Program-made: the position numbers and the translations under genes | Sequence record: MH494197.1 | Reading direction: 5' to 3' (one strand) | DNA: 64,000 nt | The notes under the pieces: model-generated | The model's database searches: none | What the model was told of the DNA's origin: nothing | The model's input: the letters and a program-made list of their open reading frames with translations, nothing else | Part shown: piece by piece, positions 1 through 17,087 of the stretch | Position numbering within the stretch: the stretch's first letter is position 1 | How the letters are laid out: each line of letters begins with the position of its first letter

Positions 1-271
1 TGAGATAGTTTGCAAGTACTTTCTACAAATACTTTTAAAATAGTTTTCAGTACTCAATACTCATATAATAGATACACTTATGCACCCTGTGGGCTAGTGA
101 GCTATCTCTCAATGAATATATAATAGCAAAATGGCTGACCGAGTCAACCACTTTTTCATTTATTTTAGCTTTTAGAATCGCCGCCTTTCGCGTCATGCCT
201 TGCTTGATGTATTCTGTACTTTCGCTTTACGTGCATTCGCTTTATTTGCTTTCGTAAACGCCGAACAACTT

Positions 272-529
272 TTATAGTTTAAACCTGTTGGATTCATTTA
301 AATCACCATAAAGAATAGATAGGTTACTAACAACGCCGCGATCAATGCACCGACCGAACTGTAATAAGCTAATGATCTCATTTTTAGCCTGAAAATAATG
401 TTTAATTTGAGCGGCGGTCAGTGCACAATTACGCAGGAAGTTTTCTGTATAACTTTTGCGAGTACTGAAAGAGAATTGACCTTTGCTGCTGCCGATAGTA
501 ACATCAAACCGAGCGTTGTATTGTTTCAT
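272..529 (-). CDS. Hypothetical early protein (MKQYNARFDV..., ~85 aa)
   Basis: The ATG at 529 lies just downstream of cassette 549-610. The ORF-track start at 580 runs through the promoter hairpin. Confidence 0.7.
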   Translation of the reverse strand: MKQYNARFDVTIGSSKGQFSFSTRKSYTENFLRNCALTAAQIKHYFQAKNEIISLLQFGRCIDRGVVSNLSILYGDLNESNRFKL

Positions 530-1691
530 TTTGTTTCTCCTGTTATTGGGGAGAATCATTTCTCCCTTCATGTAAAACATTATACAGTACTAAAACTAAT
601 TGCAAGTACTATTTTTAGATTTACGCAAACTTTCTACCATCTCAGGAGTAAGGTCTGCGGGTAGGAAACTACTTCATCAACGAAACGTAAAGGAATACCC
701 CAGCGAAAGGTGAACGTGCTTTCTTAGTATTACTCTTTTTGATGCTTTCATTTCATATTCTTAATTAGTGGGGAGAATCATTTCTCCCTTCATGTAAAAC
801 ATTATACGCGTTTAAAACTAATTGCAAGTACTATTTGAAAGTAAATGCTCATACGCTACATTAACTACGTTTTCAATAACCGACTGTACAGAAAGATCCC
901 CACTTCCGGCTATAGTAGAAATCGCTTACAGTAGTGTCATCGTATGCAAATACTTTACCGTGACTGCATCAATCACATACATATTAACCTTTAAGATGTC
1001 GATCTTATCCTGTACAGTAAGCATATTAATTAACCTTTTAAGTACTGACTTAAGTAATCTTGTTGATCTTCGGTGATTGCAGCCATCTTCCCTAGTACTG
1101 GATTAATGATATAATCCCTGTAACGTCCTGTAACGCATTCTCAGGCGGTTTAACGGCTGGGGTAGCCATAGCCATTGCCGACTTGTTCGACGCTGTAACG
1201 CTCATAAAGGCGGCATTCTTCCGGTGTTAACATAGCATCAATGCGTTTCATTGGTTTAATGATGCTTTCGATCTCATTCAGTACTTGATTAACGTTCATG
1301 GTATAATCCCAATATAAGCGGCCTAAATCGACCGCTAACGATGTTTTGATTAATAGGTGTATGGTTGACGTTCAAACAATGATTGCACGTTGTACGCCCC
1401 GCTTATGGGCTTTGCTGGTAAATCAATTTTATATTGTTCACGCTTAAAGATAATAAAACGGCAATTGTTTTAACATCAAAATTGATTGAACGTTCCGAGT
1501 TTACCATCGTGCACAAATACAAGATAACCGCTCGCTACTTGTTTTGTAGTACTGGTTGCAACCATAGACCGCCGAACATGTGTACCTGCGTCGATTAAAG
1601 TACTGATATTTTTCATTTTACTATCCTCTTAAGTTGATTTAATTTCTTTCCCTATGCAGACACTGTACCAAAGTATCTGCATAAAGTAAAG

Positions 1692-2013
1692 CTAATTAAA
1701 GATCTTTTTACGTTTTACATCCTGTACAGTACAATGCAACGGGATAGACAAATCATTGCACAAACGATAGAGGGAGGTTTCATCAGTATTAAGCCCGTCT
1801 ACTGATTCCTTTAAGAGAGATAACGCCGTTTGTTGGTATGCATCTTCATAGCCATAAGTAAATGATTCAACCGCCAGATCATTCAAGCCGTTATCCAGTT
1901 CGACGCTTACATGACAAGAATGATGTATTGCCATATGAATCAGACCAACGTTTACCGTCAACATTGATTGCACGGATTGCAGCCGAAACGGTGTTAATGA
2001 TAGTTTTAGCCAT
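1692..2013 (-). CDS. Hypothetical early protein (MAKTIINT...KKIFN), one frameshift
   Basis: Promoter TTGACA-17-CATAAT at 2057-2085 and ATG at 2013; joins to ORF 1692-1973. Confidence 0.55.
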
Positions 2014-2338
2014 TTTAGTATTCCTTAAATTAATATGTGTCGTCTTGATAAAATCTATTATGCCAGTACTATCAAACTATGTCAATAGTACTGTGATAAT
2101 ATTTTTACTTACTTTTTGCTTTCTTTATTGCTTCCACCGGTCGGCCCATTCTTTACCCCATACTTGTAAATTATAATGGTACTGGCAAAGTGCAACGCCC
2201 CGCTTTAAACCAGTAATAGATTTTTACCACATTGACAAGTTTTCATTTTAGTTTCCTTGTAGTGGGAGAACCATTTTCCCCTTGATGTAATGTATTATAC
2301 TTTATTCGATTTACTTTGCAAGTACTTTTTAATTTAAT

Positions 2339-2551
2339 TCATCCGTAAAGGATACGCTCAACGCCCAAATCAGTTAAACTAATCGACGGCACTTGATAGG
2401 TTTCAATGTATGCTACACTTGCCCACTGACCGAACTCATTAACGGCCGTATTCATTGCATTTTGCAATTCCACACCTTCCTTGTTGGTAATGACTGCAAC
2501 TACTTGTTCGTTGCCAGTAGTACCAGATACGCGAGTAATGATAATAGCCAT
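2339..2551 (-). CDS. Hypothetical early protein (70 aa)
   Basis: Intact ORF directly behind promoter 2574-2612. Confidence 0.75.
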   Translation of the reverse strand: MAIIITRVSGTTGNEQVVAVITNKEGVELQNAMNTAVNEFGQWASVAYIETYQVPSISLTDLGVERILYG

Positions 2552-2987
2552 TTTTTAATTCCTATTCAGTAGTTGATGTATGTATTATGCCAGTACTTAA
2601 AACTATTGTCAAACTATTTTTAAAGTTTATCAATGATTGATGCCGTTTCATTGATAGTCTTGCCGTGTTTTGCACACGCGATAACTGCTTTAAATTCCTT
2701 TGATGACCAATCTTTCTTACTGCATACTGACATTACTTGTAAAGTAAAACAATCCAGTTCATAAGTATTCATCTTTATATCCTCAGTTAGTTAAGGTGTC
2801 TGCCTTGATGTAATTAATTATACGCTAATCTCTTAATCGTGCAAGTACTTTTATTACTTTTTGCAAAATACTTTAAACGCTCTCAATCGCATTACAACGA
2901 CCTTAACGCCACCAGCTAGGCAATGCATCAGATAATCAGTTTAAAGCGTTAGAATCGTTTCTAGGCGGTGCTGGTGGCGTAAACGAT

Positions 2988-3015
2988 AAAAAAAGCCCAC
3001 CGTTTAAGGTGGGCT
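2988..3015 (-). terminator. Rho-independent terminator
   Basis: Minus strand AGCCCACC-TTAAAC-GGTGGGCT followed by a T7 tract, just after the stop at 3028. Confidence 0.85.
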
Positions 3016-3027
3016 AGTGATTCAGTT

Positions 3028-3494
3028 TTATGCTTCAACTTTGCGATGAGCTTCGATCCATTCCTCGCGAGTCATACCACTGGAGTTAATCGCGTCCAGT
3101 ACTACCGCAATGCAGTTACCACGCACCGGAATCAGATATTCTTCCCGTTGTACTACCGCTACGCGTTCCTGAATCCATTTTTGGCTTTTACTTCTGGCTT
3201 GTCTTCCCATACTTAACCGCCGTGGCTTTTGTGCCATCTCTGTAACTACTTCCAGATCCAACTACTGCCGCCTGAATACTTTCGATTGTTGCTTGTAGTT
3301 CTGCTTCACGGGCCGCCTTTGCCGCTTCAATTTCTGCCGCTTTATTTGCTTGTAGTTCTTTCGCAGTACTGTAAGCGATGTTAAAATTATTGCGTACCGC
3401 TTTCATGGTATCGTTATCCAGTTCAGCCGGATCTCAGCCGCGACGTTAGTTTCATTTGCACCAGTGCTTTGATGAATGATTTTACATTAGCCAT
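3028..3494 (-). CDS. H-NS/StpA-like protein (~155 aa, frameshifted in this sequence)
   Basis: Re-joined frames give MANVKSFIKALGANETNVAAEIRAELDNDTMKAVRNNF...AREAELQATIESIQAA-LDLEVV...EEYLIPVRGNCIAVVLDAINSSGMTREEWI. By eye this aligns with the H-NS coiled-coil (KLQQYREMLIADGIDPNEL) and C-terminal domain ([32 protein letters not shown]). It has its own promoter (3604-3646) and terminator. Confidence 0.55.
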
Positions 3495-3979
3495 TTTATA
3501 AATCCTCAATTAAAGTTTAGTTTACGTTTATTAGTGTATCAAAGTTTTCTGACGTGTCCAGTTTTTCGTTCGACTTACTGGCGGTCTACTTAGTGCTCCC
3601 CGTCTTGATGTAATACATTCTACGCCTTTTTGCGGTAATGTCAACTACTTTCTTAAAACTATTTTCAAAGTATCTCAGTACTACGATACTACAAAACAAA
3701 AAGCCCACCCGTGGGCTGTATTAATCAGTAAGTAAAATATTAAACACTTTACCATTTAACGTTATTGGTGCACTGCTACCGTGCTCAAGATCCGTTAGTA
3801 TACCTGCAATCGCTTTATCATTGGCGACCTTTCCAGTGTCCAACAGTACGACAGTACTGATAAGATTAACGCTCGTTTCAATATCATAATGCACGGCGTT
3901 AAGGAGTTGTGTATACTGCTTTCGTTAAGTAAAACTATTCGTGCTGTCATGATGTACCCGTAGTATCTATCAACGGCAA

Positions 3980-4267
3980 TTAATAACGCCGGAATGCGTT
4001 ACTTTCAGTATCCATAACAGTGACCGAACCGCGTTTAGTACTTGCATCGTAATAAATTGTCGTGCTACCTTTTTCGTCTTCTTCATGGAACGGCCCGTTT
4101 TTAAATGCTTCTGGCTGGATCTCTAAATCCTTTAAAACAATCTCGCCAGTACTTTCATTGGTCATCGCTACAGTGCACTGAATGAATTTTTCACTACTTA
4201 CATCTAACGACGCATTAACAGCGAAAGAGGAAACAGATAAAGCCGTGGCGATGATTGCAATTTTCAT
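3980..4267 (-). CDS. Small secreted/periplasmic protein
   Basis: Signal peptide MKIAIIATALSVSSFAVNA; sits behind cassette 4286-4343. Confidence 0.75.
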   Translation of the reverse strand: MKIAIIATALSVSSFAVNASLDVSSEKFIQCTVAMTNESTGEIVLKDLEIQPEAFKNGPFHEEDEKGSTTIYYDASTKRGSVTVMDTESNAFRRY

Positions 4268-4677
4268 TTGATTATCCTTAGTTACGGGAACCGCTCTTGC
4301 GATGTAAAATATTATACAGTACTAAAAACTATTATCAAGTACTTTATGATTTTTATAAAACATTTCAGCAGTGATATTTTACCCGTTGGCTGTACTTTAT
4401 CCAGAATTTTTGATGTCCGGCCGTCCAAATGAATATGATCCGTAAACCGTAAACCAGTAGTTACCCTCAGTGTTTACATGTACAGCATAATAGGGAACGC
4501 CCGCGATTCATCACTAGTAAAGTGTGCTACCGTTCCGTTACATTCGCAGACGTTGATTTGATTTGTTCAAGCATTTTATTATTCCTTAGTTACCGTGGGA
4601 ACTGCTCCTATGCAAAACATTATACGCGTTTAAAACTAATTGCAAGTATTTTAATAAAAGTATTTGAAAAATAGTTG

Positions 4678-4706
4678 TTGACAAGTGCATCCAGTACTGG
4701 CATAAT
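4678..4706 (+). promoter_or_regulatory. Plus-strand sigma70 promoter with no downstream ORF
   Basis: TTGACA-17-CATAAT followed by TACTACATCAAG, the same start motif as the minus-strand cassettes. Confidence 0.75.
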
Positions 4707-5443
4707 TACTACATCAAGACGAAACAGTCACTAACCCACCGGGTGCATAGATCCGTCTATTAAATGATTCAGTACTGAAAAGTAACGGGAGTTATTATCT
4801 CCCCGTTGTTATTTTGTGGTATAAACAGAAGTCGCCTTTATTTGCTACGCCGCCAGTGTAACGCGAGGAATAGTCACCCGACTTCTGCTATTACCAGTGT
4901 ATCATCATTCAATTCGCGCAAACGGCTGGATCTTGTACGCCGATTTTGTCGGCATGTTCCCGCATAGATTTAACCAGTGCTTCCAGTTGGGAAAGAGTAG
5001 TGATATTAGCCATTGTATTTTCTCATTACCGTGGAGAACCATTTCTCCCTTTGATGTAAAACATTATACAGTACTGAAAACTAATTGCAAGTACTTTTTA
5101 ATATTGTTTGTCGTCGTCTTCCTCGATGAATTGACCGACGAAATGATCTACTTTCGCTTTGAGGCTTTTATAATCTTCTTCTACTTCCTTTAAACGTTCC
5201 GTAGTATTCCAGTGCCTCAACATATGCGGCCTCAGCCGTTTTCTCACGCATAGCTAAATTCATTCCACGCGTTTCATCAAATAGCCAAAACCATCGGTGC
5301 ATTCACTGATAGACAATGATTTGTTTAACACATTGTACTTTATTACTTTACTCATTAGATAACCTCAGTAAAGGCGGGAACTATTACCCGCCTCGATGTA
5401 AAGTATTATACGCTTTTAAACTTAGTTTGCAAGTACTTTTAAA

Positions 5444-6034
5444 TTAATATTCGATTGATTCTACTACGCCATCAATAACATTGAATTGATACTCGTTTCA
5501 ATCAGTGCCGTAATGTTTTCCAGTAGTGAATTGATCCTCATATGCATTCTCTAAATCACGGTACAACTTGCGGGACAATTCACGAATAGTGTCAGTGAGT
5601 AGTTCCTCAAGCTCATTAACTAACGTTTTTGTTTTGCGGTTAAATCCAGTGTAAGCCGATTCAATGTACCCGCTTACAGTATTCTTGAGTAGTGGGAGTG
5701 CGAACGCTTTACACTCATCGCCAAACCATCTTCATTCAGCAAGTGACGGATTGAGCGATTAGTTAATGCTTTACCTTGCGTAAAACTTCACTGCGTCAAC
5801 GTGGTCAGTACTGATTGATGCACCGTCCCCGGGACCAAAAGCCACTGAATCGTAAATCAGCGTCATTAATGCCATATTCCGGTAGTACTGTTTCAGTATT
5901 CATTTCACTTTCAGAAAAATAATCATCGTTTAAGTTTTTTCACGTTCCCGAACCAGTTCGATAGCTGACGTTTGTTGTTCTGCGTTCAATTCAGAAAAAT
6001 CCATAACGAAAGTAGTAGTAGTGATAGTTTTCAT
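5444..6034 (-). CDS. Hypothetical protein (~195 aa, contains FSGFWSRGDGAS), frameshifted
   Basis: Starts MKTITTTTFVMDFSELNAEQQ behind the promoter at ~6054-6090 and ends VVESIEY*. Not in the ORF track because of indels. Confidence 0.55.
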
Positions 6035-6241
6035 TTTGTAACCCTCATTCAGTAGTTGATGTAAGTATTATACGCTTTAAAAACGTCAAACTATTTTATC
6101 AGGGAGTTTTGTGCCTATTCCTCGGCTACTTAACGGAAGTTACTTATTTGTTCCCCGTCCTGATGTAAAACATTATACGCCTTTAAACATAGTTTGCAAG
6201 TACTTTTAAAAATAGTTTTCAGTACTGAATATTAAAAAGTA

Positions 6242-6401
6242 TTGACAGCATTATCAGTACTAATATAATTCCCATGACAACAGCTAACCCACGGTGCAAT
6301 TGTAACTGTAATAAACTTTTTCTAGATACACTTCCGCACCCTATGGGCTACGGCTTATCTGCCAATGAATACATTATGCCAGTACTGACAAAATAAGTCA
6401 A
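6242..6401. promoter_or_regulatory. Convergent promoter pair enclosing ~100 bp of non-coding DNA
   Basis: Plus TTGACA(6242)-16-TATAAT(6264); minus TTGACT(6401)-17-CATAAT(6373). Confidence 0.7.
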
Positions 6402-6750
6402 TACCGGCAATTGTAAAGATTTGTAAACTGCTTATACTGCAATCGCGTCCGTGCTATAATAATAATAAGTGCTATGGTGTGACTTACCTTTTATTTCAGT
6501 ACTGAATGAATCCGAACGATTTGCATATGATGTTAATTTAAAGTACTTTGATTTGTTGATACGTTACACCACAGATCCGCGTAAGTAGTTTTATTAGTGG
6601 TAGTATCTTTACGGTTTTAACTTCAGTCATATACATATTAGTCATTTTTATTACTCCGAGTTATAGGGGAACTATTCCCGCTCTCGATGTAAAACATTAT
6701 ACGCTTTTAAACTTAGTTTGCAAGTACTTTTATTCAAGTACTGCAATCTT

Positions 6751-6975
6751 TTAGTACGGTACACGGTCACGCGGTTGCTTTCGGTCGAGCTTTATTTCTA
6801 CCACTCGACGCGATACACTATCAGGACTTTTCAACGCCGCTAACCAGTACTGTAATGATCTGGCTGTACTACGCTTTACAATGGCCCAACGTTTACCACG
6901 TTCCGATTGTACGCCCATATCTTTAAACGTTGCCCGTCCGGCGTGCTGCGATCCGAGCTTGTTCACGCGTCGCAA
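6751..6975 (-). CDS. Small basic hypothetical protein
   Basis: Arg/Lys-rich ORF; the true start is probably slightly upstream (indel). Confidence 0.55.
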   Translation of the reverse strand: MRRVNKLGSQHAGRATFKDMGVQSERGKRWAIVKRSTARSLQYWLAALKSPDSVSRRVVEIKLDRKQPRDRVPY

Positions 6976-7829
6976 AATACTTAATATTCATGTTGTTCTT
7001 ATCGTTGGTGTATGAATAAACACTATTATAAAGTACTATCATCGTGCAATAGTACTTTAAATCTATTCTATTACATTCCAACCATTGCAGCACGGATCGA
7101 TAGTGCTATATTTGAATCCGTCCGGTGTTTTTCTTGTCCAGTCTGTTCTAAAAAATAACATCATATGACGGGCCGCATCATTGCGATTAGTGCTATCGTT
7201 AATAAAGTCCCAACTGGTATAATGATTCATCGTTATTAATCCAAAGGCTTACATTCCAATGAGTTTTGTTTTTGTGACCTAAGAACATTTTGATTTAGCC
7301 ATTTTTAATCTTATATAGTGGGGAACTATTTCACCCTGATGTAAAACATTATACGCTTTTAAACTTAGTTTGCAACTTTATTAAACTTATTTGTAATTTT
7401 GCACTGTCAGCCCATACTGTGAAACGATGCATATTATCCCATGCATCTTGTTTTAAATTTAAACTGTGCAATTCCTCAGTAGTTGCTATCCCCATTGGCT
7501 TACTACACACCGCGAAATTTTTCTCCATGTACTGATAAACCATCGTTAAATCATTTGAGATCATTACATGGATCATTGAATCAGCTATGAAGTAGCGTAT
7601 TGTTCACGCACGGCAACGGTTCCCGATAAGCTGTAAATGTGAATTTTACAGTTTCAGCCGGAAGACCTTTCATTTCACGGAAGTTAACCGTGTTAAGCAT
7701 GATTTTATTGATTTGAGTCGCCATCGTTTTAATCTCTTAATGTAGCGGGAAGTGTTCCTGCCTCGATGTAAAACATTATACGCTTTTATCAGTATGCAAG
7801 TACTTTCTACAAATACTTTTAAAATAGTT

Positions 7830-8700
7830 TTCTCTATATAGGGAACTATTATTCAGTACTGCAACCATCCGTGGGAACTATCTTTCTATAGTAGTACTAT
7901 TATTCAGTACTGAATCAATCCACCAAATCATCCTGATACCCGTAAAACGGCCTCAGACGCATTCTAACGCATTAATACACCTAAGCTATACATTTGCACC
8001 ATTCCAATCTTGGCTGGGCCGTTTAAACGCGTTAAATTATTTTCAATTATTTTGTTTTAGCTATTGACTCAGTACTAAAAAGCGTATAATTACACATAGA
8101 CGCGAGAAAGGAAACCAGAGGGTGCGGAATTACGCCCAAAATTCAAGATATAAAAAAAGGATACACCGCACCCTAGCAGGTTAACGCACTTTCTAGTACT
8201 GAAATATAGTAACATAGTCCGCTGATAGCAAGCAATTAAAACTTTTTCATCCGGTATTGCTTTATTTTTCCAGTACTGTATAATAGTTCCATCGTCGAGA
8301 AAGACTCAGCCCACCGTATAGTTACGCCCAAAATTCAGTACTGAAAATTTTAAAAATATCCGTCCGTGCGCGTTGTTCCCCCAGTTTATAAGATAATGAT
8401 TCCAGACTCCAGAACGGTTCATCCCACGCGGTAGGGGAACTATTGGAAAACAAAATAAAATTTTGATTTAGCCGTCTATACTTCCAGACGTGTAACCATC
8501 TAGCCGTTTAGCTGTCCAAACGTCAGCCATCCAGCCATCCAGAAATCTAGCCGTTTAGCCGTCCAGATGGATAGCCATTTCCAGACTTCTGAGGGCTAGA
8601 CATATCTACGTCCAAAATCCATCCGTGGTAACTACGCCCAAAATCCGTCAGTACTATACCATAGATCATCTTTGGAGTATTCAGTACTGCCATCAGCCCC
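7830..8700. repeat. Non-coding repeat cluster (candidate origin or terminal-repeat boundary)
   Basis: Four (T/C)TACG(C/T)CCAAAAT copies (8130, 8322, 8606, 8632), eight YAGCYRTY units at 8469-8580, GGGAACTAT repeats, plus-strand promoters at ~8064 and ~8257, and no ORF. Confidence 0.65.
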
Positions 8701-9816
8701 TCACATGTTACCCTAGGAGGATGAAGATCACCGCGGTACTGAATACTGTTAGAGGGAATCCACCAGCTTGGTGGTATAATCGTTTAGATTAAAATCAGTA
8801 CTGACACCATTCTGTTAATATCAGTACTGTTATTGATTTTCATATGAGGTTCAAAAAGATGTACCCACCACAGGAGGAACTATCTTTTCTGTACTGTCTC
8901 ACAGGAGGTAGAGTAAATGAATCGTTCGCAACTCATCTCTATGTAGAACATTATACAGTACTGAATCATAATGTCAATAGCTTTCTTTCATTATTCAGTA
9001 CTGATATTCTTGAGAACTACCCGACTACAAACATCATTATATCCCACAAATCATAAACGTCCCAACGTAAATTTCAACTTTCGAAGATCCAACTTTATTT
9101 CATAGGTACTCCAAAATTTTAGGATCGAGATTTAGGATGGAGTACTAACCAACTTTTGCTGAGCTCTGGATATTAAGGTGAAAGTAATAATTCAGTAATT
9201 AATCATTGGTGATTACTTTTGATTACATTTGATGTAATTTGCAAAATGGAAAAGGAGCTTGAAACTAGTACGGCAGACTTCCTCTGCCTACTAGGTGCTG
9301 GTTTCATCTATCGGAGGGAAATGGATTAACCTTAGCAATACGTAACTGAATACGTTCTTGATTAAACGTGCACATTCCTGTACTCTATTACACTCTAGTA
9401 CACTCTAGTACTCAATACTGATCACTACAATGATTATAAATGATTACTTAAATGTTTATATATGATTACTTATGACTACATATGATTAGGGTTTACTGGG
9501 AGAATCTAGTGATCGCATTTGTCCAGCTGAATTTTAACATATATAACATATGTTAAAGCCTGTCCAATGCTTCTGCGGAGCTTCTGTCTATATGTTGAAT
9601 TACTTCCTATATATAAGCATTAACATATAGTAGTACTGATTATGCTGTACATTCTCTTTAATATTATAAGGGTCTATAGCAATCTCGGTACATCTGTTAA
9701 ATGCATATCTATTAAATGCCAGTACTATTATAGATCTAATCCATGCTTGGTCAGTCGGTGGTAGTTTACTTATATAGTACTCTTTATAGTTTTTATGTTC
9801 TGCATAGTATACCTTA

Positions 9817-9996
9817 TTATTTCAAAGTACCATATAGTACTCTTAATAGGAAGTAGTACGTATTAGAGATATCATTACTAGTTAAAACAATCTTTGTACA
9901 CATATTAAATTCGTATTGAGTCATTGCTGGGATTAAATTGTTAACCCATGCTTGTTCGTTTTCTTTGAGTTTACTTATATAGAAGTCTTTATACAT
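9817..9996 (-). CDS. KEFY-family protein (MYKDFYISKLKENEQAW..., 59 aa)
   Basis: Hand-translated intact ORF, below the ORF-track length cutoff. Confidence 0.75.
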   Translation of the reverse strand: MYKDFYISKLKENEQAWVNNLIPAMTQYEFNMCTKIVLTSNDISNTYYFLLRVLYGTLK

Positions 9997-10228
9997 AGTA
10001 TTATCTCTATTAATATGATAGTACTAGTGTTAGTACTGAGCACAATTGTTCTTTATAGTTCTTAGGGTATATAGAATCTTTTATGCACTCATTGAAGTGC
10101 CATAGGTATAATCTTGGGTCGCATTCTTTATATATTTTACGCCATAGGTATATATCTTGGGTCGCATTCTTTATATATTTTTTACGGGGACGAATGTTAG
10201 TTTTCTTATATAGAAGTCTTTGTGTTCT

Positions 10229-10438
10229 TTATTCATATAGGAATAGTATACCTATGATGCCTGAGTACATGTTAGTACTGTTATTATTGGCGTTTGCGTT
10301 TAAAGTCATTTGAATACAATTGTTGTAGCATAATCTGCCGAAATATGTATCAGTACTTAAAGGTGCAGTAGTCCTTAGAAACATTTGTTCTGTGGGGCTG
10401 AGGTGTTTGGAGTAGAATTCTTTATGTTCATTATTCAT
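10229..10438 (-). CDS. KEFY-family protein
   Basis: MNNEHKEFYSKHL...YNNCIQ...YSGIIGILFLYE. Confidence 0.85.
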   Translation of the reverse strand: MNNEHKEFYSKHLSPTEQMFLRTTAPLSTDTYFGRLCYNNCIQMTLNANANNNSTNMYSGIIGILFLYE

Positions 10439-10634
10439 AGATATATAGGAGTGCCATTATGTTGGAGTATAGTTTATTGTTGTCATTTTCTTGCAGTGCT
10501 TGTATAGTACTACGTATACAGTTATTATAGCATATTTTTGTGAAATTATTTTGTAATTTCATTTTCATTGGTTTTGCTTTATAGAATGATTGTTTTGTGG
10601 GACTAAGATGATTTATGTAGAACTCTTTATACAT
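10431..10634 (-). CDS. KEFY-family protein
   Basis: MYKEFYINHL...YNNCIR...YSNIMALLYIYE. Confidence 0.85.
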   Translation of the reverse strand: MYKEFYINHLSPTKQSFYKAKPMKMKLQNNFTKICYNNCIRSTIQALQENDNNKLYSNIMALLYIYE

Positions 10635-10651
10635 GTTAGTACCTTAGTGCT

Positions 10652-10837
10652 TTAGTGTCTGTATATAAGTAATAGTAAGAATACGTACTGCACCTGTTCA
10701 TCTTTAGTATTGAGTACTGTACGTATTGCGTCATTAAACAAAAATATAGTACTTGGGTCATTAGAATTTAAGGGGTTTACGGGGACGGCGTGTTTGTAGT
10801 TCCCTTTAACAAATTGTATATAGTATTCTCTATGCAT
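10652..10837 (-). CDS. KEFY-family protein
   Basis: MHREYYIQF...FNDAIR...YVFLLLLIYRH. Confidence 0.8.
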   Translation of the reverse strand: MHREYYIQFVKGNYKHAVPVNPLNSNDPSTIFLFNDAIRTVLNTKDEQVQYVFLLLLIYRH

Positions 10838-10838
10838 A

Positions 10839-11027
10839 TCAGTACCTATATATTAGGGCGAGAATGTAGTACAGTTCATATGGAATGTAATTTGGGGTGA
10901 TAGCACACTGTGTATGGTAAATGAATTGTTGGGTATTTTTCTTATCCTTGATATCTATTGGGTTTAGTGGTATAAGCATTTGGGAGTTTAGTTCCAGATG
11001 GTTTAAGTAGAATTCTTTGTTATTCAT
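10839..11027 (-). CDS. KEFY-family protein
   Basis: MNNKEFYLNHL...YYILALIYRY. Confidence 0.8.
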   Translation of the reverse strand: MNNKEFYLNHLELNSQMLIPLNPIDIKDKKNTQQFIYHTQCAITPNYIPYELYYILALIYRY

Positions 11028-11226
11028 AGAAGAATATTAGTCCCATTACGCCTGAGTACTGAATATTTTTGTTATTGTTTTCTAAAGCTTCTAGAGTAAT
11101 ACGTATACAATTATTAAAGCAATCTCTGGCGTGTGGTGTATCTAAACGTAAAGGTGATACACTCCTTAGAAACATTTGTTCTGATGCACTGAGGTGTTTG
11201 GTGTAGAATTCTTTCTGTTCGTTCAT
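11020..11226 (-). CDS. KEFY-family protein (close paralog of 10229-10438)
   Basis: MNEQKEFYTKHLSASEQMFLR...FNNCIR...YSGVMGLIFFYE. Confidence 0.85.
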   Translation of the reverse strand: MNEQKEFYTKHLSASEQMFLRSVSPLRLDTPHARDCFNNCIRITLEALENNNKNIQYSGVMGLIFFYE

Positions 11227-11236
11227 ATTGGCCTCT

Positions 11237-11425
11237 TTAGTACACGAAAGCTAGGTACAGTGTATGATACAGTACTCGATGATAGCTATCAAAATCTAGT
11301 ATACATGCTTTAGTGCACATAGTAAAGTACACTTTATCGTTTTGAGCATTGATACCGCGAGGTTTATCTAATAGATTAGTACTGAGGTACATTGGGAAAT
11401 ATTTTGTGTAGTATTCTTTATGCAT
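11237..11425 (-). CDS. KEFY-family protein
   Basis: The family start MHKEYYTKYF lies at 11425, inside ORF 11237-11470. Confidence 0.75.
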   Translation of the reverse strand: MHKEYYTKYFPMYLSTNLLDKPRGINAQNDKVYFTMCTKACILDFDSYHRVLYHTLYLAFVY

Positions 11426-11807
11426 ATTAGTACCTGAATATAAGTAGGATAGTGTTATATAATTGGTCATAGCTACTACTATTTTCTATACTGCGTTCTA
11501 TGCAATTATTGAATCCCAGTACTGCCAAATCGTTATCCGGGGGACTTTATATCTGGCGTAGTGTTCAAATATACTGGGAGAAATTGTGTGTAGTATTCTT
11601 TGTGCATATTAGTACCTATATATTAGTAAAAGGATGTGATACAGTACTCGATTATAGTCTTCAATATATATCGAGGATTTAGTGCACTGAATGAAGTAGT
11701 CTTTTTCGTAGTTTTTTCTATACCCAATGGTTCTGTTGGTAGAAGGTGTTGGAGATACATTGGGAGTTTCTCTATGTAGTATTCTTTGTGGTTATTCATA
11801 TTATGTG

Positions 11808-11981
11808 TTATTTCGTGAAAACAAGGGTTAGTACTGCATAGTACAAGTCATACGTATCTTTAGGGTTAATAGCACCTTTAATACATTCTTTCATTACTTC
11901 ATTATAGATAATTTTAGTACTGAATGTATTGGATGTTACTATATCGGAATTAAGGTACGAGAGGTAGAATTCTTTATACAT
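11808..11981 (-). CDS. KEFY-family protein
   Basis: The family start MYKEFYLSYL lies at 11981, inside ORF 11808-12044. Confidence 0.75.
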   Translation of the reverse strand: MYKEFYLSYLNSDIVTSNTFSTKIIYNEVMKECIKGAINPKDTYDLYYAVLTLVFTK

Positions 11982-12080
11982 AGTTTGAAATATACGTAAT
12001 GAGGTGATGAAATTTCTTATCAGTACTGATAAGTTCCTGTACATGTTTTGTTAGTTTGTACGCGTTTTATAGAGTCCGGA

Positions 12081-12458
12081 TTATCGATTACAGTACTGTA
12101 CATGAATAGATCTTCTTCTGATAATTCTTTGCCGGTAATTCTTTGAGGAATTGCAGTACTGTATCAGTTTCGTTAGTACGTTGCTTTTGGAAGAAGTGCA
12201 TGTTATCGTGTATTTTTCTGAACCCATGCAGTACATATCTCCGATTTGGAATTGTGCAGTACTGATATCATGGGTGCTATTACAATTCCCGAAGAAGTAT
12301 ACATTCCCGAAAGATAGAATTATAGTGCACGGGATATTATCCATGTGTATATAGATAGATGCATTCTTTAGTGCTTTTGTGCTGGTATTAGTACTCAATA
12401 CTTTTAAATCAGTATTATAGATATTAATAAAAGCAAGAGCTATATTATTTTTCTTCAA
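12081..12458 (-). CDS. Hypothetical protein (125 aa) interrupting the KEFY array
   Basis: Long ORF on the operon strand with no family motif. Confidence 0.6.
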   Translation of the reverse strand: MKKNNIALAFINIYNTDLKVLSTNTSTKALKNASIYIHMDNIPCTIILSFGNVYFFGNCNSTHDISTAQFQIGDMYCMGSEKYTITCTSSKSNVLTKLIQYCNSSKNYRQRIIRRRSIHVQYCNR

Positions 12459-13207
12459 GTACGATTTGAGGTTCTTAGATACGAGAACATTTCTGGATTT
12501 TTCTTTTTATTTCGTTTCTTTAGTATATTCGGGTGATACGTATAAGATGATGTAACTGATTCTGCTTGAATACTGTTGAGGTATTTAAAGTGCTTAAGGT
12601 ATTGTTTGCTGTGTGCATTAAGTTTCATTTGGTTTCCTTTATACAGATGCGAGTGCGAGGATTTCCCTGAAGGGATTATCTTTTGTTAGTGCGTGATGAA
12701 TGCAGCTATTGAGATTAATATTTTTAGTACTGTTAGTTGCCGTTGTAGTACTTCACGAAGGTGTCGTACATGAAACGGTCTTTAATGCTTATGTGTTCTA
12801 TATAGTATTCTTGCATATTATTCCTTACATAGAGATGAGTTTCAGTACATCAATATACATATAACGTTCAGATGACTGTACACGGGTAGTGATAATCTCA
12901 ATCGATATATTTTAATTCCATGTGCAGATGATTGATGGTGCTGAATAAATGAGTTGTGCATACTTTGTTCTATGTGGTTTAGTTTATTGAAGTAGTACTC
13001 AAAAGTGTTCATGTCTACCTTAGATTGAGATTAGTTTAAGTACTTCTCTGTATGTGTACTTTTCGTTTTGTGCTTCTACTGTACATGATAGTAGGTATCG
13101 TTTTTTATCTCTTTTGTTCCCGACTGTGTAGTACCTTTGGAATTTATTATAGTTGTATCTATCTTTGTGCTGGAGTTTATAGATATAGAATTCTTGCATA
13201 GAGTACC

Positions 13208-13393
13208 TTAGATTGCTATCAGTTTCAGTACTTCAATATATGTGCGGTACTCTGCTTTAATTAAATTTGTACACACTGTAAGGGAATTTCTTTGTATAAG
13301 TTTATTGCCGCTTTTATACGCATTTCTCCACACATAGAGATGAGATCTTTCAGGCATAGATAGTTTATTTGTATAGTACTCAAATGTATTCAT
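13208..13393 (-). CDS. KEFY-related protein (MNTFEYY subtype)
   Basis: Paralog of MNTFEYYFNKL at ~12825-13012; both end ...Y(I)(D/E)VLKLI. Confidence 0.75.
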   Translation of the reverse strand: MNTFEYYTNKLSMPERSHLYVWRNAYKSGNKLIQRNSLTVCTNLIKAEYRTYIEVLKLIAI

Positions 13394-13995
13394 ATATTAC
13401 CTCAAATAGAGATTAGTTTAAGTACTTCTCTGTATGTGTACTTTTCGTTTTGTGCATCTCTTGTGCTTGTATATAGGTATCCTCGACGATATTTGTTGCT
13501 CCCGTTCTTGTAGTTGAATTCGAACTTATTGTAGATGAATCTATCGCCGCTGTAATTTACTTAAGTACAATTCAATGCTCATAGTATTCTCTTTACATAT
13601 CAATAAGTTTCAGTACTGCTCTGTACGTGTACTTAGTTGTTAGTGCTTCTTTATAGCAATACAGAAGTAATGTTGTTTGTCTCTTATACTACCGCGTTTG
13701 TAGTACCATACATTGGAGTTGTGGGTGTACTTGTCCCTGTCGGATAGATTTTGGTAATAGTATAATATATGATTCATGGTAATGTAATTAGCCTTATTAT
13801 GTTAAAGTACTCGGTCCCCGTACACCTTGTAGAATATTATCAACTACATTTTCTTGGTGCAGGATTAATACATTCGGTGCGGTTCTTTTAAGGTTTTTAA
13901 AGTACTGTATTCTTGTTTAAGGATGAACTGTACATCTTTAGGGAGAATATCTAAGTAGTACTGGTGTATGTTCATAGTTTTCATATAGTACTCTT

Positions 13996-14181
13996 TTAGA
14001 ACTTAAAGATGAGGTTCATGATAGATAAGTACTTAGTTTCAGGAAATTGATGTTCTATTGCATAACGTGTCTCCAGTCTGAAGTCAAATTTATAAAAGGG
14101 ACTATTCATATCCATAGGTTCATTGGGAAATGAATCTCTGTATTGTTTGTGCAGCTTACTACAGTAGAATTCTTTATACAT
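13996..14181 (-). CDS. KEFY-family protein
   Basis: MYKEFYCSKL...YLSIMNLIFKF. Confidence 0.8.
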   Translation of the reverse strand: MYKEFYCSKLHKQYRDSFPNEPMDMNSPFYKFDFRLETRYAIEHQFPETKYLSIMNLIFKF

Positions 14182-14182
14182 A

Positions 14183-14395
14183 TTAGTGCTCGATTAAAAG
14201 GGTTAGGATGTAATAGTATTGCATACTTTCTACCCCTTGTACAGCATTTCTTATTTTATTATTCCTGTACGAGTTCAAGAGTTTAGGACAATGTTTGAAG
14301 TTTATATAATTATTTTGTGTATACAGTAGGCTTTCTCGTAGACCTTTTGTTGGTAGTGCATCGATGTAGTACTGTTCAATGTTCATAGTGTTCAT
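14183..14395 (-). CDS. KEFY-related protein
   Basis: MNIEQYYIDAL...YYYILTLLIEH. Confidence 0.75.
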   Translation of the reverse strand: MNTMNIEQYYIDALPTKGLRESLLYTQNNYINFKHCPKLLNSYRNNKIRNAVQGVESMQYYYILTLLIEH

Positions 14396-14719
14396 AGAGC
14401 TACCAGTACTAAGATTTTTGATAATTGTTTGTTTCTATCCCGCAGATGTTGTTGTGTAAAATGCTCACTACAAGGGTATCAAGTGCATTGTTCAGCATAA
14501 GGTTACATCCAGTACTGTTATATTTTTTAGCTCAATTAGCCACGAACAATCCGCGAGAAATTTCCCGTACTCTAGTTCATTTAGCGTATTAATGTAGTAC
14601 TTAAGTGCATTTGTCATGTACAGTTCTCCTTATATTCCTTCTATAGTACATCAGTACTGAAAGGTTGTCAAGGGTTTTCTTTTTGGGGTAAATATGATAT
14701 AATGAATAAAGGAGGAAAT

Positions 14720-15866
14720 ATGTTACCTTTTGTAAGAATGGTTAAGTACGGGAATATTGCACCAGTACCGAAAAAATAAAGAAAGTTATAGCAGGATATG
14801 ATAATTTATATGTACTATATGGTGATGGTTCGCTATATGGTTGTGGAATCAATAACTATCAACAGTTAAATATTGATGGAACTGCTACACAAAATAATTG
14901 GGTACTAATTACCAATGGTGTTAGTAATGCATGGGCTGGTGGATACAATATTTTATATTTGAAAGAAGATAAATTTATAATGCACGGAACTAATGTCTCA
15001 TTAGGTTTAGGAAATACTACAATTCCATTAGGTGGAGTAGATGTAACTTCTTCATTCCCAGATATCTCTAATATTAAAATGATATCCATTGGTTTTGATT
15101 CAATGCACTATGTTAGTGCTGATGGTACAACTGTATATGGAAGAGGTATGAACACAAATGGTTCTGTTGGTTCAGGTAGTACTTACTCACAGAGTACTTT
15201 CACTTCAGTACTGAATAATGGAACTAATCAGGTTATTGATATATTTGGTAACGTTAATAATACAGTGCTTCTAACATCGAATGGTGAGCTTCGAGCATGT
15301 GGGACAAGTGCTTATGGTTCTATAGGAAATGAAACTGGTAAGTGGACATCGTTTGGTTTAAAATTATCTGGCACTAAAATAATGGGTGGTAATGGGTATA
15401 GTACGCTTGCATATACAAATTCGGGAATGTACCACTCAGGGTGGCAGTTAAATGGGGAACTAGGAAATGGTTTAGATACTAACGTACAGGTATATCCATT
15501 TCAATTTAACTCTAAAACGATAGATAGCAAGATAGATAAAATTGCCAAATCATCATCTGGGTCATATGTTAACATGTACTCAACAACAGAAGGAAAGATA
15601 TATACGACAGGTTCGTTTGGTAAAACGGGTCAACTACTGCATTGAATTTGTTCACCAATACATTAACACTTATAAATTACAATCCAGATACCGCCTCGTT
15701 GTATACGTGCACAAACTTCAGTGTTGTGTATGATGGTAATGAAACTATTGCTGTAAGTGGTAGTCCTACATATGTACCGAGGGCGTTGCCGCTAATAGAT
15801 GGACTACAATTCCATTACCCAAGTAATACTATGCCAGTACTTGATGCTGGCTTTTCTTTTGATTAA
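14720..15866 (+). CDS. Leader-tagged RCC1/BLIP-II-like beta-propeller protein #1 (frameshifted)
   Basis: Hybrid leader MLPFVRMVKYGN; the body is closely similar to #13; LYGCGxN..QL and GWQLNGELGNG repeats. Confidence 0.8.
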
Positions 15867-15893
15867 ATATAGTATAATGAATAAGGAGGAATT

Positions 15894-17017
15894 ATGTTAC
15901 CTTTTGTTAGAATGTTTGATTATGGGAATATAATCGAAGTTAATAATATAAAGAAAAGTGTTGTTAGTTACACTCTTGAAATGTTTCTAATGCAAGATGG
16001 CACTGTATATGCACACGGTGAAGATTCAAACTATAATGCGGGTTTAAGTACACAGTTTGTATCGTTAGGAGCAGTTCAACAAATCACAACTGAAGTTGAT
16101 GACTTATGGTTAGGATCGTTTTCCGTTGTTATTAAAGGTGATAAAATATATGGTTCAGGTTCAACATATGCATTCACGAATTCTAATACTTTCCAACAAG
16201 GATATACTGACTGGGCTGTGTATTTCACTGGTATAGATGTTACCCAAATTAAAAAATGTTATGTGGTTATACAGCATTTATATTAATGAAAGACGGAACA
16301 CTTTATGGAAGAGGATGGAATCGAAGTGGTACATTAGGTTTAGGACATAAAAATTATGTTTCAGCGTGGACTGTACTTGACACTAATGTGGATAATATAT
16401 TTGGCGGTTACCTTGGCGATACATTGTTTAAGATTAAAAACGATGGAACTGTATATGGTTCAGGTTCAAATAACAGCTTTCAAGTTAAAGCAACATCGGG
16501 TGATGCAACCACATTTGTTCCGTTGTTTGATGATATATCTTATGATATAAAATGCAGTTTTGTTTCTGGTGTTGGTTTTGTAATGATAACATCTGATAAT
16601 AAAATATATGCAACTGGAACTACTTTTGCTGGTAGTGGTGCACATAGTAAAGTTTTTGATGTTGGTTTTACTATAGGTGATATGAGTAATATATATCATC
16701 CTGATTCGTTGGACTATTCGACTAGTGTTGTATTTTTAATTAATGCAGATACAAACAAACTAATAGCAACTGGGCATACCCATTTACGGAAGTAGTTCAA
16801 GTTCCTTCCATATTTTACAGCATTTCAAGAATTCAATTTTACATCGTTCAATTCGAATACACGATATAGTGGGTCTTTATACTGGAATACATTTTACGAA
16901 GGTAATAATGTATGGATGAATGGATATAATCCTGAAAATACGGGTGGAAAGAATTTCTCATTGTGTTCAATACCGTTAGATACTATTATTACTAAGCAAA
17001 TTGATTTACCTTTTTGA
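15894..17017 (+). CDS. Leader-tagged RCC1-like protein #2 (frameshifted)
   Basis: MLPFVRMFDYGN; LYGRGWNRSGTLGLG repeat. Confidence 0.8.
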
Positions 17018-17087
17018 ATACTATGCCAGTACTCAAGTACTGGCTTTTATTTTATTAAATATAGTATAATGAATAAAGGAGGGAAAT

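Follow-up and report, generated by a model that had tools for sequence, protein, structure and literature searches.

A probable, strongly diverged H-NS-family protein encoded near the genome end of RaK2-like jumbo phages

The DNA analysed in this study, called the window in the following, is a stretch of 64,000 nucleotides from sequence record MH494197.1. Close to its beginning, at positions 3028 to 3494 of the minus strand, it carries a gene whose product very probably belongs, as a divergent but full-length member, to the H-NS/StpA family of nucleoid-associated proteins, with a homology that is remote but genuine. H-NS silences AT-rich foreign DNA, and T7 gp5.5, T4 Arn and MotB are phage proteins that act against it. 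A megablast search with positions 2800-3750 identified the source of the window as Escherichia phage CMSTMSU (100%), an Asteriusvirus jumbo phage of 386 kb, and matched 36 more records of Escherichia and Salmonella jumbo phages at 80-95%.

The record carries the flag UNVERIFIED_ORG, and the H-NS-like gene is annotated there as a fragment only. In phages WPEC5 and phAPEC6 the orthologue is a single unbroken open reading frame (ORF) of 483 nt encoding 160 amino acids (aa), compared with which the CMSTMSU copy lacks 16 nt, spread over seven sites:

3028..3494, minus strand: coding sequence of the H-NS-like protein, 467 nt, with the ATG at 3494-3492 and the TAA ending at 3028.
3460/3459, 3429/3428, 3231/3230, 3209/3208 and 3183/3182, minus strand: deletions of 1 nt each relative to WPEC5/phAPEC6.
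3262/3261 (5 nt) and 3150/3149 (6 nt), minus strand: larger deletions relative to WPEC5/phAPEC6.

An earlier note on this DNA, made from the letters alone, had put the gene at exactly this place and had re-joined its frames. The peptides it quoted are real (LQATIESIQAAVVG in the ORF 3188-3406; (M)DLEVV... and EEYLIPVRGNCIAVVLDAINSSGMTREEWI in the ORF 3028-3261), and the seven deletions make the re-joining necessary. Over 4.5 kb, the window differs from WPEC5 by 78 deletions and 5 insertions, which corresponds to approximately 17 small deletions per kb. The most reasonable reading of the frame breaks is an artefact of sequencing or assembly, since the same damage is found across the neighbourhood and the record is flagged as unverified. 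A true pseudogene was considered and rejected, because deletions at this rate run through the record and are not specific for the gene. Between positions 1 and 7500 there is a strong bias towards deletions relative to related phages, and almost all small genes are fragmented; the same probably holds for the whole record. All protein analyses were therefore performed with natural intact orthologues, and the CMSTMSU copy was left unrepaired.

The alignment with H-NS that had originally been made by eye was reproduced by BLASTP, which found 29% identity to E. coli H-NS over the C-terminal 59 aa (E-value of 0.007 in a single comparison), and by the profile-profile program hhalign. With an alignment of 26 members of the phage family, hhalign gave a value of 71% against a narrow H-NS alignment and of 93.2% (P-value 2.9e-7, 111 co-linear columns) against an alignment of 18 members, which consisted of diverse H-NS and StpA sequences together with eight plasmid H-NS proteins. 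The diversity of this wider profile was taken from plasmid genes; a protein search and a scan of genome contigs yielded only orthologues that were at least 82% identical. The match places residues 27-153 of the phage protein on residues 22-135 of H-NS, that is from helix 3 to the C-terminus. The score of the real comparison was 46.9, compared with 20.3 for the reversed one, at most 17.2 in 40 column shuffles and at most 21.2 in 40 block shuffles. Thus, the profile search that had been named beforehand as a check on the idea does find H-NS, with shuffled controls scoring far lower. The C-terminal domain on its own still gave P-values of 1.3e-4 to 1.5e-4 over 35-38 columns; the N-terminal domain on its own matched H-NS weakly (16% identity, 32% probability). 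Residues conserved with H-NS include, in H-NS numbering, G104, G113, A117, A122, G127 and F/W133.

The two Pfam models for the H-NS family behave differently with the phage proteins. On Histone_HNS_N (PF22470), the orthologue of Klebsiella phage Muenster, an Alcyoneusvirus, reaches 25.5 bits (E-value 1.3e-5) at a cut-off of 24.5; the Alcyoneusvirus representative P0026 remains under this cut-off with 21.5 bits, and the Asteriusvirus protein is not matched. The Muenster protein (gp011, QOE32183.1) is 37% identical to the Asteriusvirus protein over the full length, and the Alcyoneusvirus orthologues including gp430 of K64-1 are 34-37% identical to it. Since the Muenster protein passes the threshold and the clades are 37% identical, membership of the Asteriusvirus protein follows by transitivity only. 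A C-terminal domain of the Histone_HNS type (PF00816) is detectable by profile-profile comparison only: the model was not among the matches listed up to an E-value of 1 for a 16-member alignment, nor was it found up to 0.1 with ten members taken singly and with four orthologues from other genera. The Pfam model MvaT_DBD (PF22055) had no match in the Asteriusvirus protein, the family alignment or orthologues from other genera. In a tblastn search with H-NS as query, which returned thousands of plasmid matches and just 8 phage records, the jumbo-phage family was not retrieved.

A structure was predicted with AlphaFold2 (AF2) from the 26-sequence alignment and reached a predicted local distance difference test (pLDDT) value of 83.7. 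A first AF2 run with 14 near-identical sequences (pLDDT 62, with 38-63 in the C-terminal domain) was replaced by this one. In the model, helices 2-12, 16-23, 28-77 and 83-97 are followed by strands at 114-118 and 124-128 and then by two more helices at 135-144 and 148-155; the order of these elements is that of H-NS. The parts of the protein correspond to the following positions:

3207..3494, minus strand: N-terminal helical domain, aa 1-99, with two short helices, a 50-residue helix, a turn with the invariant Gly80 (GLDLE) and a fourth helix.
3166..3206, minus strand: linker, aa 100-113, with a net charge of 0; the block of lowest pLDDT in the AF2 model.
3028..3165, minus strand: C-terminal domain, aa 114-160, and stop codon; strand-strand-loop-helix-helix, aligned on the H-NS DNA-binding domain 97-135.
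3115..3123, minus strand: codons for Arg130-Gly131-Asn132, aligned on H-NS Gln112-Gly113-Arg114.

In a Foldseek search against 550,129 AlphaFold models of Swiss-Prot, ranks 1 to 18 were all occupied by H-NS or StpA (probability 0.92-0.99, query residues 9-151), after which the probability dropped to 0.18. Against the AFDB clusters, the top cluster was named 'Histone' (0.94). In the ESM Atlas, H-NS clusters took ranks 1-3 when searched by shape, and among 100 neighbours by embedding there were 66 H-NS and 20 MvaT_DBD clusters. A different C-terminal fold had been named as a result that would speak against the idea; the model keeps the H-NS order of elements, and its best library matches are H-NS and StpA. 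The N-terminal domain, as modelled, is predicted to follow the site 1/site 2 oligomerisation pattern of H-NS, with a G-[LI]-D turn that falls on H-NS G69-I70-D71 in oligomerisation site 2 and contains the invariant Gly80.

There are also results that weigh against the assignment. No Pfam model reached its threshold on the Asteriusvirus protein, in which Histone_HNS was absent up to an E-value of 10. Searches of PDB chains by hidden Markov models, done with the whole protein, the family profile and each domain, did not find H-NS. The Foldseek template modelling (TM) scores to H-NS models are only about 0.3, and neither Foldseek nor VIA-align retrieved an H-NS domain from the solved structures, where Foldseek found no significant match and VIA-align returned nothing but long helices (Z of 6 at most). 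Moreover, the structure is itself a prediction, made from 26 sequences. It might be argued from the missing Pfam and PDB sequence matches, the low TM-scores and the weak sub-threshold matches to Tox-PL-2 and DUF3846 that the protein combines a coiled coil with an unrelated small alpha/beta domain and resembles H-NS by chance or convergence. We regard this as highly improbable, since four independent methods converge on H-NS with shuffle controls scoring far lower, the match is co-linear across both domains, and one orthologue passes a curated Pfam threshold. Apart from PHROG 27871, a family of unknown function, the scans of Pfam, NCBIfam and PHROGs with the intact Asteriusvirus orthologue gave only sub-threshold matches. 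Tox-PL-2, DUF3846, DUF1993 and RNase_H were all rejected, because they lie below the cut-offs and have no support from the structure searches. The best matches of the PDB sequence search, designed tetratricopeptide repeat/coiled-coil proteins and actinohivin, were likewise set aside as compositional or chance matches.

The putative DNA-contact loop of the C-terminal domain is altered. Residues L126-I134 (LIPVRGNCI) align exactly on T108-P116 of E. coli H-NS (TWTGQGRTP). The Q/RGR motif of H-NS is not retained, as QGR has become RGN: the glycine is kept, the last arginine is replaced by asparagine, and the first position is occupied by arginine. Gly131-Asn132 is invariant in all 26 aligned family members, which have the form x-G-N with R, K, S, T, H or N as x; furthermore, Arg114, Gly122, Arg148 and Ile152 are nearly invariant across the family. 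In the nuclear magnetic resonance structure of MvaT with DNA, Gly99-Asn100 lies in the minor groove, and the asparagine side chain takes the place of the Q/RGR motif's final arginine in H-NS and Lsr2 (PMC4466236). Therefore, the phage loop has a precedent as a DNA-contact loop. Judged by its sequence, it is a known kind of variant, with the length of the H-NS loop and the chemistry of MvaT. The earlier note was right in describing an altered loop, LIPVRGNCI; its reading of a replaced hook needs refinement, since the central glycine is kept and Gly-Asn is known from MvaT, so that the AT-hook is not destroyed.

The distribution of charges, a departure on which the earlier note did not remark, also sets the phage protein apart from H-NS. 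Along the Asteriusvirus protein, the net charges are -4 (N-terminal part), 0 (linker) and -3 (C-terminal domain); the corresponding values for H-NS are -7, +6 and -1. Hence, the charge asymmetry typical of H-NS, with acidic N-terminal helices and a basic linker and DNA-binding domain, is not present in the Asteriusvirus protein. Some distant family members possess a linker with a charge of +2 or +3. Conservation of a basic linker and a basic DNA-binding domain has been described for H-NS proteins, in which both are said to contribute to, or be required for, DNA binding (PMC7039000). Overall, the protein has retained a scaffold for H-NS-like oligomerisation together with a conserved loop for groove contact, and has lost the features that are tied to charge-driven, strong DNA binding.

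Members of the family are found in jumbo phages. A word-indexed search gave only 21 close relatives with 72-97% identity, a profile search of 1.8 billion representatives just 15 proteins of 150-225 aa, every one of them unnamed, and a single-protein search of viral contigs matched phage 121Q only. With tblastn against phage records, members were found in Asteriusvirus, Alcyoneusvirus (RaK2, K64-1, Muenster), the Salmonella phages Munch and 7t3, Eneladusvirus (Serratia phage BF, Yersinia phages fHe-Yen9-03/04, Erwinia pEa_SNUABM phages), Mimasvirus GAP32, Pectobacterium phage CBB and Xanthomonas phage XbC2. Apart from the invariant and nearly invariant residues, the identity within the family is 24-40% (26 members aligned). 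The phages with the gene form the RaK2-like group, with genomes of roughly 350 kb.

Where the physical genome ends are known, the gene is located 1-7 kb from the left end, inside a direct terminal repeat of approximately 20-21 kb. Within annotated terminal repeats it lies at 5709 of 20,030 in Muenster and at 6853 of 21,525 in vB_Ec-M-J, and in CBB it is part of the 'redundant repeat'; in Serratia phage BF and Yersinia phage fHe-Yen9-04 it is gene 1. For fEgEco12, a terminal repeat of 20,993 bp was confirmed via restriction digests (PMC13070987). At about position 9292 of the window, the homology to vB_Ec-M-J ends at the annotated left physical end (position 1) of that phage. The edge of the direct terminal repeat probably lies within the window, with the H-NS-like gene about 5.8 kb inside the repeat. 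According to the depositors, the terminal repeats of related phages also contain genes for a YeeU-like antitoxin, a small protein with HHpred matches to sigma factors, a DksA-like zinc-finger protein, an acetyltransferase and endonuclease VII; their positions include:

Muenster 2035-2262 and 3055-3666, vB_Ec-M-J 12349-13026, and BF 2934-3350: annotated terminal-repeat genes of related phages.

This gene content suggests a host-takeover set around the H-NS-like gene.

The resemblance to H-NS/StpA is not wholly new, as the GenBank note of the Muenster orthologue records a match to StpA. The depositors labelled this protein 'putative DNA-binding protein, HHpred hit to NP_417155.1 [StpA] 97.2%' and the K64-1 orthologue 'DNA-binding protein'; the Asteriusvirus orthologues are all annotated as 'hypothetical'. 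The papers checked on phAPEC6, fEgEco12, Sharanji, Muenster, RaK2 and PA5oct mention neither the gene nor H-NS. What sets the jumbo-phage subfamily of H-NS apart is its x-Gly-Asn loop, the lack of a basic linker in Asteriusvirus and the fixed position in the terminal repeat.

The gene is framed by the elements of a transcription unit of its own:

3702..3717, minus strand: intrinsic terminator of the preceding (upstream) gene, from a terminator scan; kept in WPEC5, phAPEC6, vB_Ec-M-J and 121Q.
3677..3682, unstranded: AGTACT site 33 nt upstream of the -35 hexamer, inside the invariant GTAGTACTG, from word count and alignment.
3617..3644, minus strand: sigma-70-type promoter with TTGACA at 3644-3639, a 16-nt spacer and TAGAAT at 3622-3617, 11 of 12 positions in agreement with the consensus.
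3495..3611, minus strand: 5' leader of about 115 nt, nearly invariant in an alignment of five Asteriusviruses.
3503..3507, minus strand: ribosome-binding site (RBS) GAGGA, 8 nt before the ATG, read from the sequence and invariant in the alignment.
2994..3015, minus strand: strong intrinsic terminator of the H-NS-like gene, from a terminator scan, with an 8-bp stem containing 6 G-C pairs followed by a T run.

The terminator at 3717-3702 isolates the unit from the preceding gene. The TTGACA and TAGAAT hexamers are invariant across the five Asteriusviruses, and both terminators, the promoter and the RBS are invariant or nearly so in WPEC5, phAPEC6, vB_Ec-M-J and 121Q. Since these four framing elements are conserved in the relatives, the description of the gene as monocistronic fits the sequence. 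The kind of promoter and the location within the terminal repeat lead us to infer 'early' expression: with a host-type promoter and terminator of its own, the gene is probably transcribed by the host RNA polymerase soon after infection. The leader showed no unusual predicted structure (fold z-score +0.46) and no Rfam match. In the annotation of WPEC5, an ORF of 42 aa, which is probably spurious, is placed over the stretch matching promoter and leader. Runs of wastewater metatranscriptomes and metagenomes contained fragmentary contigs of related phages with 85-99% identity to the query (phage 121Q, 3500-9400). As these contigs are fragmentary and carry no strand information, they are uninformative on transcription; their presence indicates that this group of phages is common in sewage.

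Concerning the function, the best explanation appears to be that the phages make an early H-NS-like DNA binder that competes with host silencing, a choice that we make tentatively. The phage DNA has a G+C content of 34-36%, compared with about 51% in the host, and is therefore a natural target of H-NS. By homology, the N-terminal helices might build dimers and higher oligomers as in H-NS, and the C-terminal domain might place its loop in the minor groove through the invariant Gly-Asn, as MvaT does. The expected behaviour would be that of a DNA binder that silences poorly. Its own assemblies on the phage DNA could then compete with the filaments of host H-NS/StpA, similar to Ler, and this competition might keep early phage promoters open. 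Most plausibly, the protein would thus interfere with the H-NS/StpA nucleoprotein on phage DNA. Competition by assemblies of its own is favoured, because the C-terminal domain is clearly constrained and the N-terminal domain is far from that of the host protein. This explanation has its weak points. DNA binding may be weak or absent, as the linker carries no net charge and the C-terminal domain one of -3, and basic versions of both are described as needed for it in H-NS proteins (PMC7039000). In addition, the data do not separate competition on the DNA from mixing into host filaments.

Mixing is the basis of the main rival explanation, which the earlier note had also named: a dominant-negative poison that co-assembles with host H-NS/StpA, binds DNA poorly with its attenuated linker and loop, and yields mixed filaments that fail to silence, comparable to H-NST or to DNA-binding-defective H-NS mutants. 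The neutral linker, the acidic C-terminal domain and the loss of the last arginine of the motif would suit such a protein. The same is true for the G-[LI]-D turn at site 2 with its invariant Gly80, for the Muenster orthologue above the Pfam threshold of the H-NS N-terminal domain, and for the horizontally acquired, truncated H-NS homologues that are known to work in this way (PMC7074111). However, a pure poison has no need for a C-terminal domain, as H-NST is without one, and yet distant phages agree wholly or almost wholly in the loop Gly-Asn and several more residues of this domain. Co-assembly is also uncertain, since the N-terminal domain alone resembles H-NS weakly. We consider the poison unlikely.

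A further alternative is an extra silencer, which would bind AT-rich DNA like H-NS and silence host defence islands, CRISPR-Cas or host genes, or would act as a 'stealth' protein like Sfh and avoid the titration of host H-NS. The complete H-NS architecture is kept, and such roles have been proposed for known full-length H-NS homologues of phages and plasmids (PMC7074111). However, the charge asymmetry and basic linker that contribute to DNA binding in H-NS proteins are missing, and a lytic, AT-rich phage of 350 kb would itself be the main target of any added silencing. This makes an extra silencer quite unlikely in our view.

In the earlier note, the protein had also been proposed as a phage nucleoid protein with new specificity and, speculatively, as a candidate binder of the word AGTACT. 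This word occurs 239 times in the window compared with 22.2 +/- 4.2 occurrences in shuffled sequences, which is an 11-fold enrichment; it is densest at 1-16000 and is the sole strongly enriched palindromic hexamer of the window. The sites are extended to AGTACTG in 218 cases and on both sides to CAGTACTG in 52 cases. In the terminal regions of Asteriusvirus, Alcyoneusvirus (Muenster), Eneladusvirus (BF), Mimasvirus (Cronobacter phage GAP32) and Munch, that is in all five sampled genera with the protein, AGTACT is enriched 20-23-fold over the mononucleotide expectation. Part of the sites belong to a family of nearly identical early promoters, AAAGTACTTGCAA-N16/17-TATAAT-gtTTTACATCaagg, one per small gene, in which AGTACT adjoins the -35 hexamer; the promoter of the H-NS-like gene is a variant of this family (AAAGTAGTTGACA):

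610, 832, 2326, 2849, 4343, 5095, 5437, 6204, 6728 and 7804, minus strand: AGTACT of the early-promoter family, about ten sites.

At 17041 and 27904 of the minus strand, T runs follow terminator-like hairpins whose stems consist of the enriched word, GCCAGTACT...AGTACTGGC. The palindromic hexamers GACGTC, CTGCAG, CTCGAG, CGATCG, CCATGG, AGGCCT and AGCGCT have zero copies in the window at approximately 7 expected each, which looks like restriction-site avoidance.

The enrichment of AGTACT is real, and one could imagine that the H-NS-like protein is a sequence-specific chromatin protein or regulator of early promoters, whose R-G-N loop reads AGTACT(G) and which marks phage DNA or auto-regulates the early genes. 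The excess of the word in the window and in all five genera would agree with this, as would its place in about ten early promoters and 33 nt upstream of the -35 hexamer of the H-NS-like gene. However, the co-occurrence exists at clade level only and amounts to one evolutionary event, so that a link between word and protein is conjectural; nothing was found that ties the two. Minor-groove loops of the H-NS type read shape and AT content, not words of 6 bp (PMC4466236), the position preceding Gly-Asn is variable (R, K, S, T, H, N) and the AGTACT enrichment is not, and many sites lie in coding sequence and terminator stems. Such a regulator is thus very unlikely. We give even less credence to the more far-reaching speculation that the RaK2-like phages build an H-NS-derived chromatin of their own, with the invariant x-Gly-Asn loop retuned to AGTACT(G). 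If this were true, the phage would distinguish its DNA from that of the host by means of the first protein it makes, which would either shield the phage DNA from host H-NS or nucleases or time the early promoters.

The phage countermeasures to H-NS known so far are small inhibitors that are unrelated to it; the present one might be a strongly diverged copy of the silencer. It is carried by a whole clade of lytic phages of approximately 350 kb and 32-36% G+C, which infect enterobacterial hosts and, in one case, Xanthomonas, and since the gene lies inside the terminal repeat, each packaged genome would hold two copies. The family illustrates how far an H-NS protein can drift and remain recognisable: below Pfam thresholds, with asparagine for the arginine of the motif and without a basic linker. 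It might therefore be seen as a natural experiment on the features that make a silencer or an anti-silencer, and on whether the Gly-Asn solution seen in MvaT evolved repeatedly. For annotation, at least 34 Asteriusvirus records with a 'hypothetical protein' could be changed to an H-NS-family protein. As RaK2-like phages are therapy candidates against E. coli and Klebsiella, knowledge of their early host-takeover genes is useful.

Among the known systems, the phage protein is closest to H-NS and StpA of E. coli (PF22470 and PF00816), with which it shares the length class, the order of elements, a co-linear profile match and the best structural neighbours. It differs from them by an identity of only approximately 20%, by LIPV instead of TWTG and RGN instead of QGR in the loop, and by being encoded on a lytic jumbo phage. 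With MvaT of Pseudomonas, which contacts DNA by an AT-pincer of Arg80 and Gly99-Asn100, it has the Gly-Asn at the tip of the loop in common. This correspondence was drawn via the position of H-NS Gly113-Arg114, which PMC4466236 equates with Gly99-Asn100. The nearly invariant Arg114 of the phage protein, 17 residues upstream, is reminiscent of MvaT Arg80, 19 residues upstream, and might be its counterpart. In contrast to MvaT, the loop is one residue longer, as in H-NS, and forms a hybrid R-G-N in Asteriusvirus; the phage protein has no lysine network, its N-terminal domain is long like that of H-NS, and its C-terminal domain is net negative. Gp011 of Muenster and gp430 of K64-1 belong to the same family and take the same place in the terminal repeat as the Asteriusvirus protein, from which they differ by an Alcyoneusvirus loop that reads K-G-N followed by an insertion of five residues.

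Ler keeps an arginine in its DNA-binding loop, where the phage protein has asparagine. Ler, which is encoded in the locus of enterocyte effacement, and H-NST are horizontally acquired relatives of H-NS that relieve its silencing (PMC7074111), and the phage protein might share this anti-silencing action by analogy. However, Ler is H-NS-like in the C-terminal domain only and H-NST in the N-terminal domain only (PMC7074111, Table 1); the phage protein possesses both domains and thereby differs from antagonists of the H-NST type in having a conserved C-terminal domain. Full-length H-NS homologues are also found on AT-rich mobile DNA, such as the plasmid protein Sfh/H-NS(R27) and the H-NS of phage EPV1 (PMC7074111). 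Unlike the jumbo-phage family, these are found by plain sequence search and have kept QGR or RGR and the basic linker. The proteins T7 gp5.5, Arn and MotB, together with Mip of LUZ24, which is described in PMC8501957, are not homologues of H-NS and act by binding H-NS or MvaT or by mimicking DNA. What the H-NS-like protein of the RaK2-like phages would share with them is the presumed purpose, the neutralisation of xenogeneic silencing early in infection.

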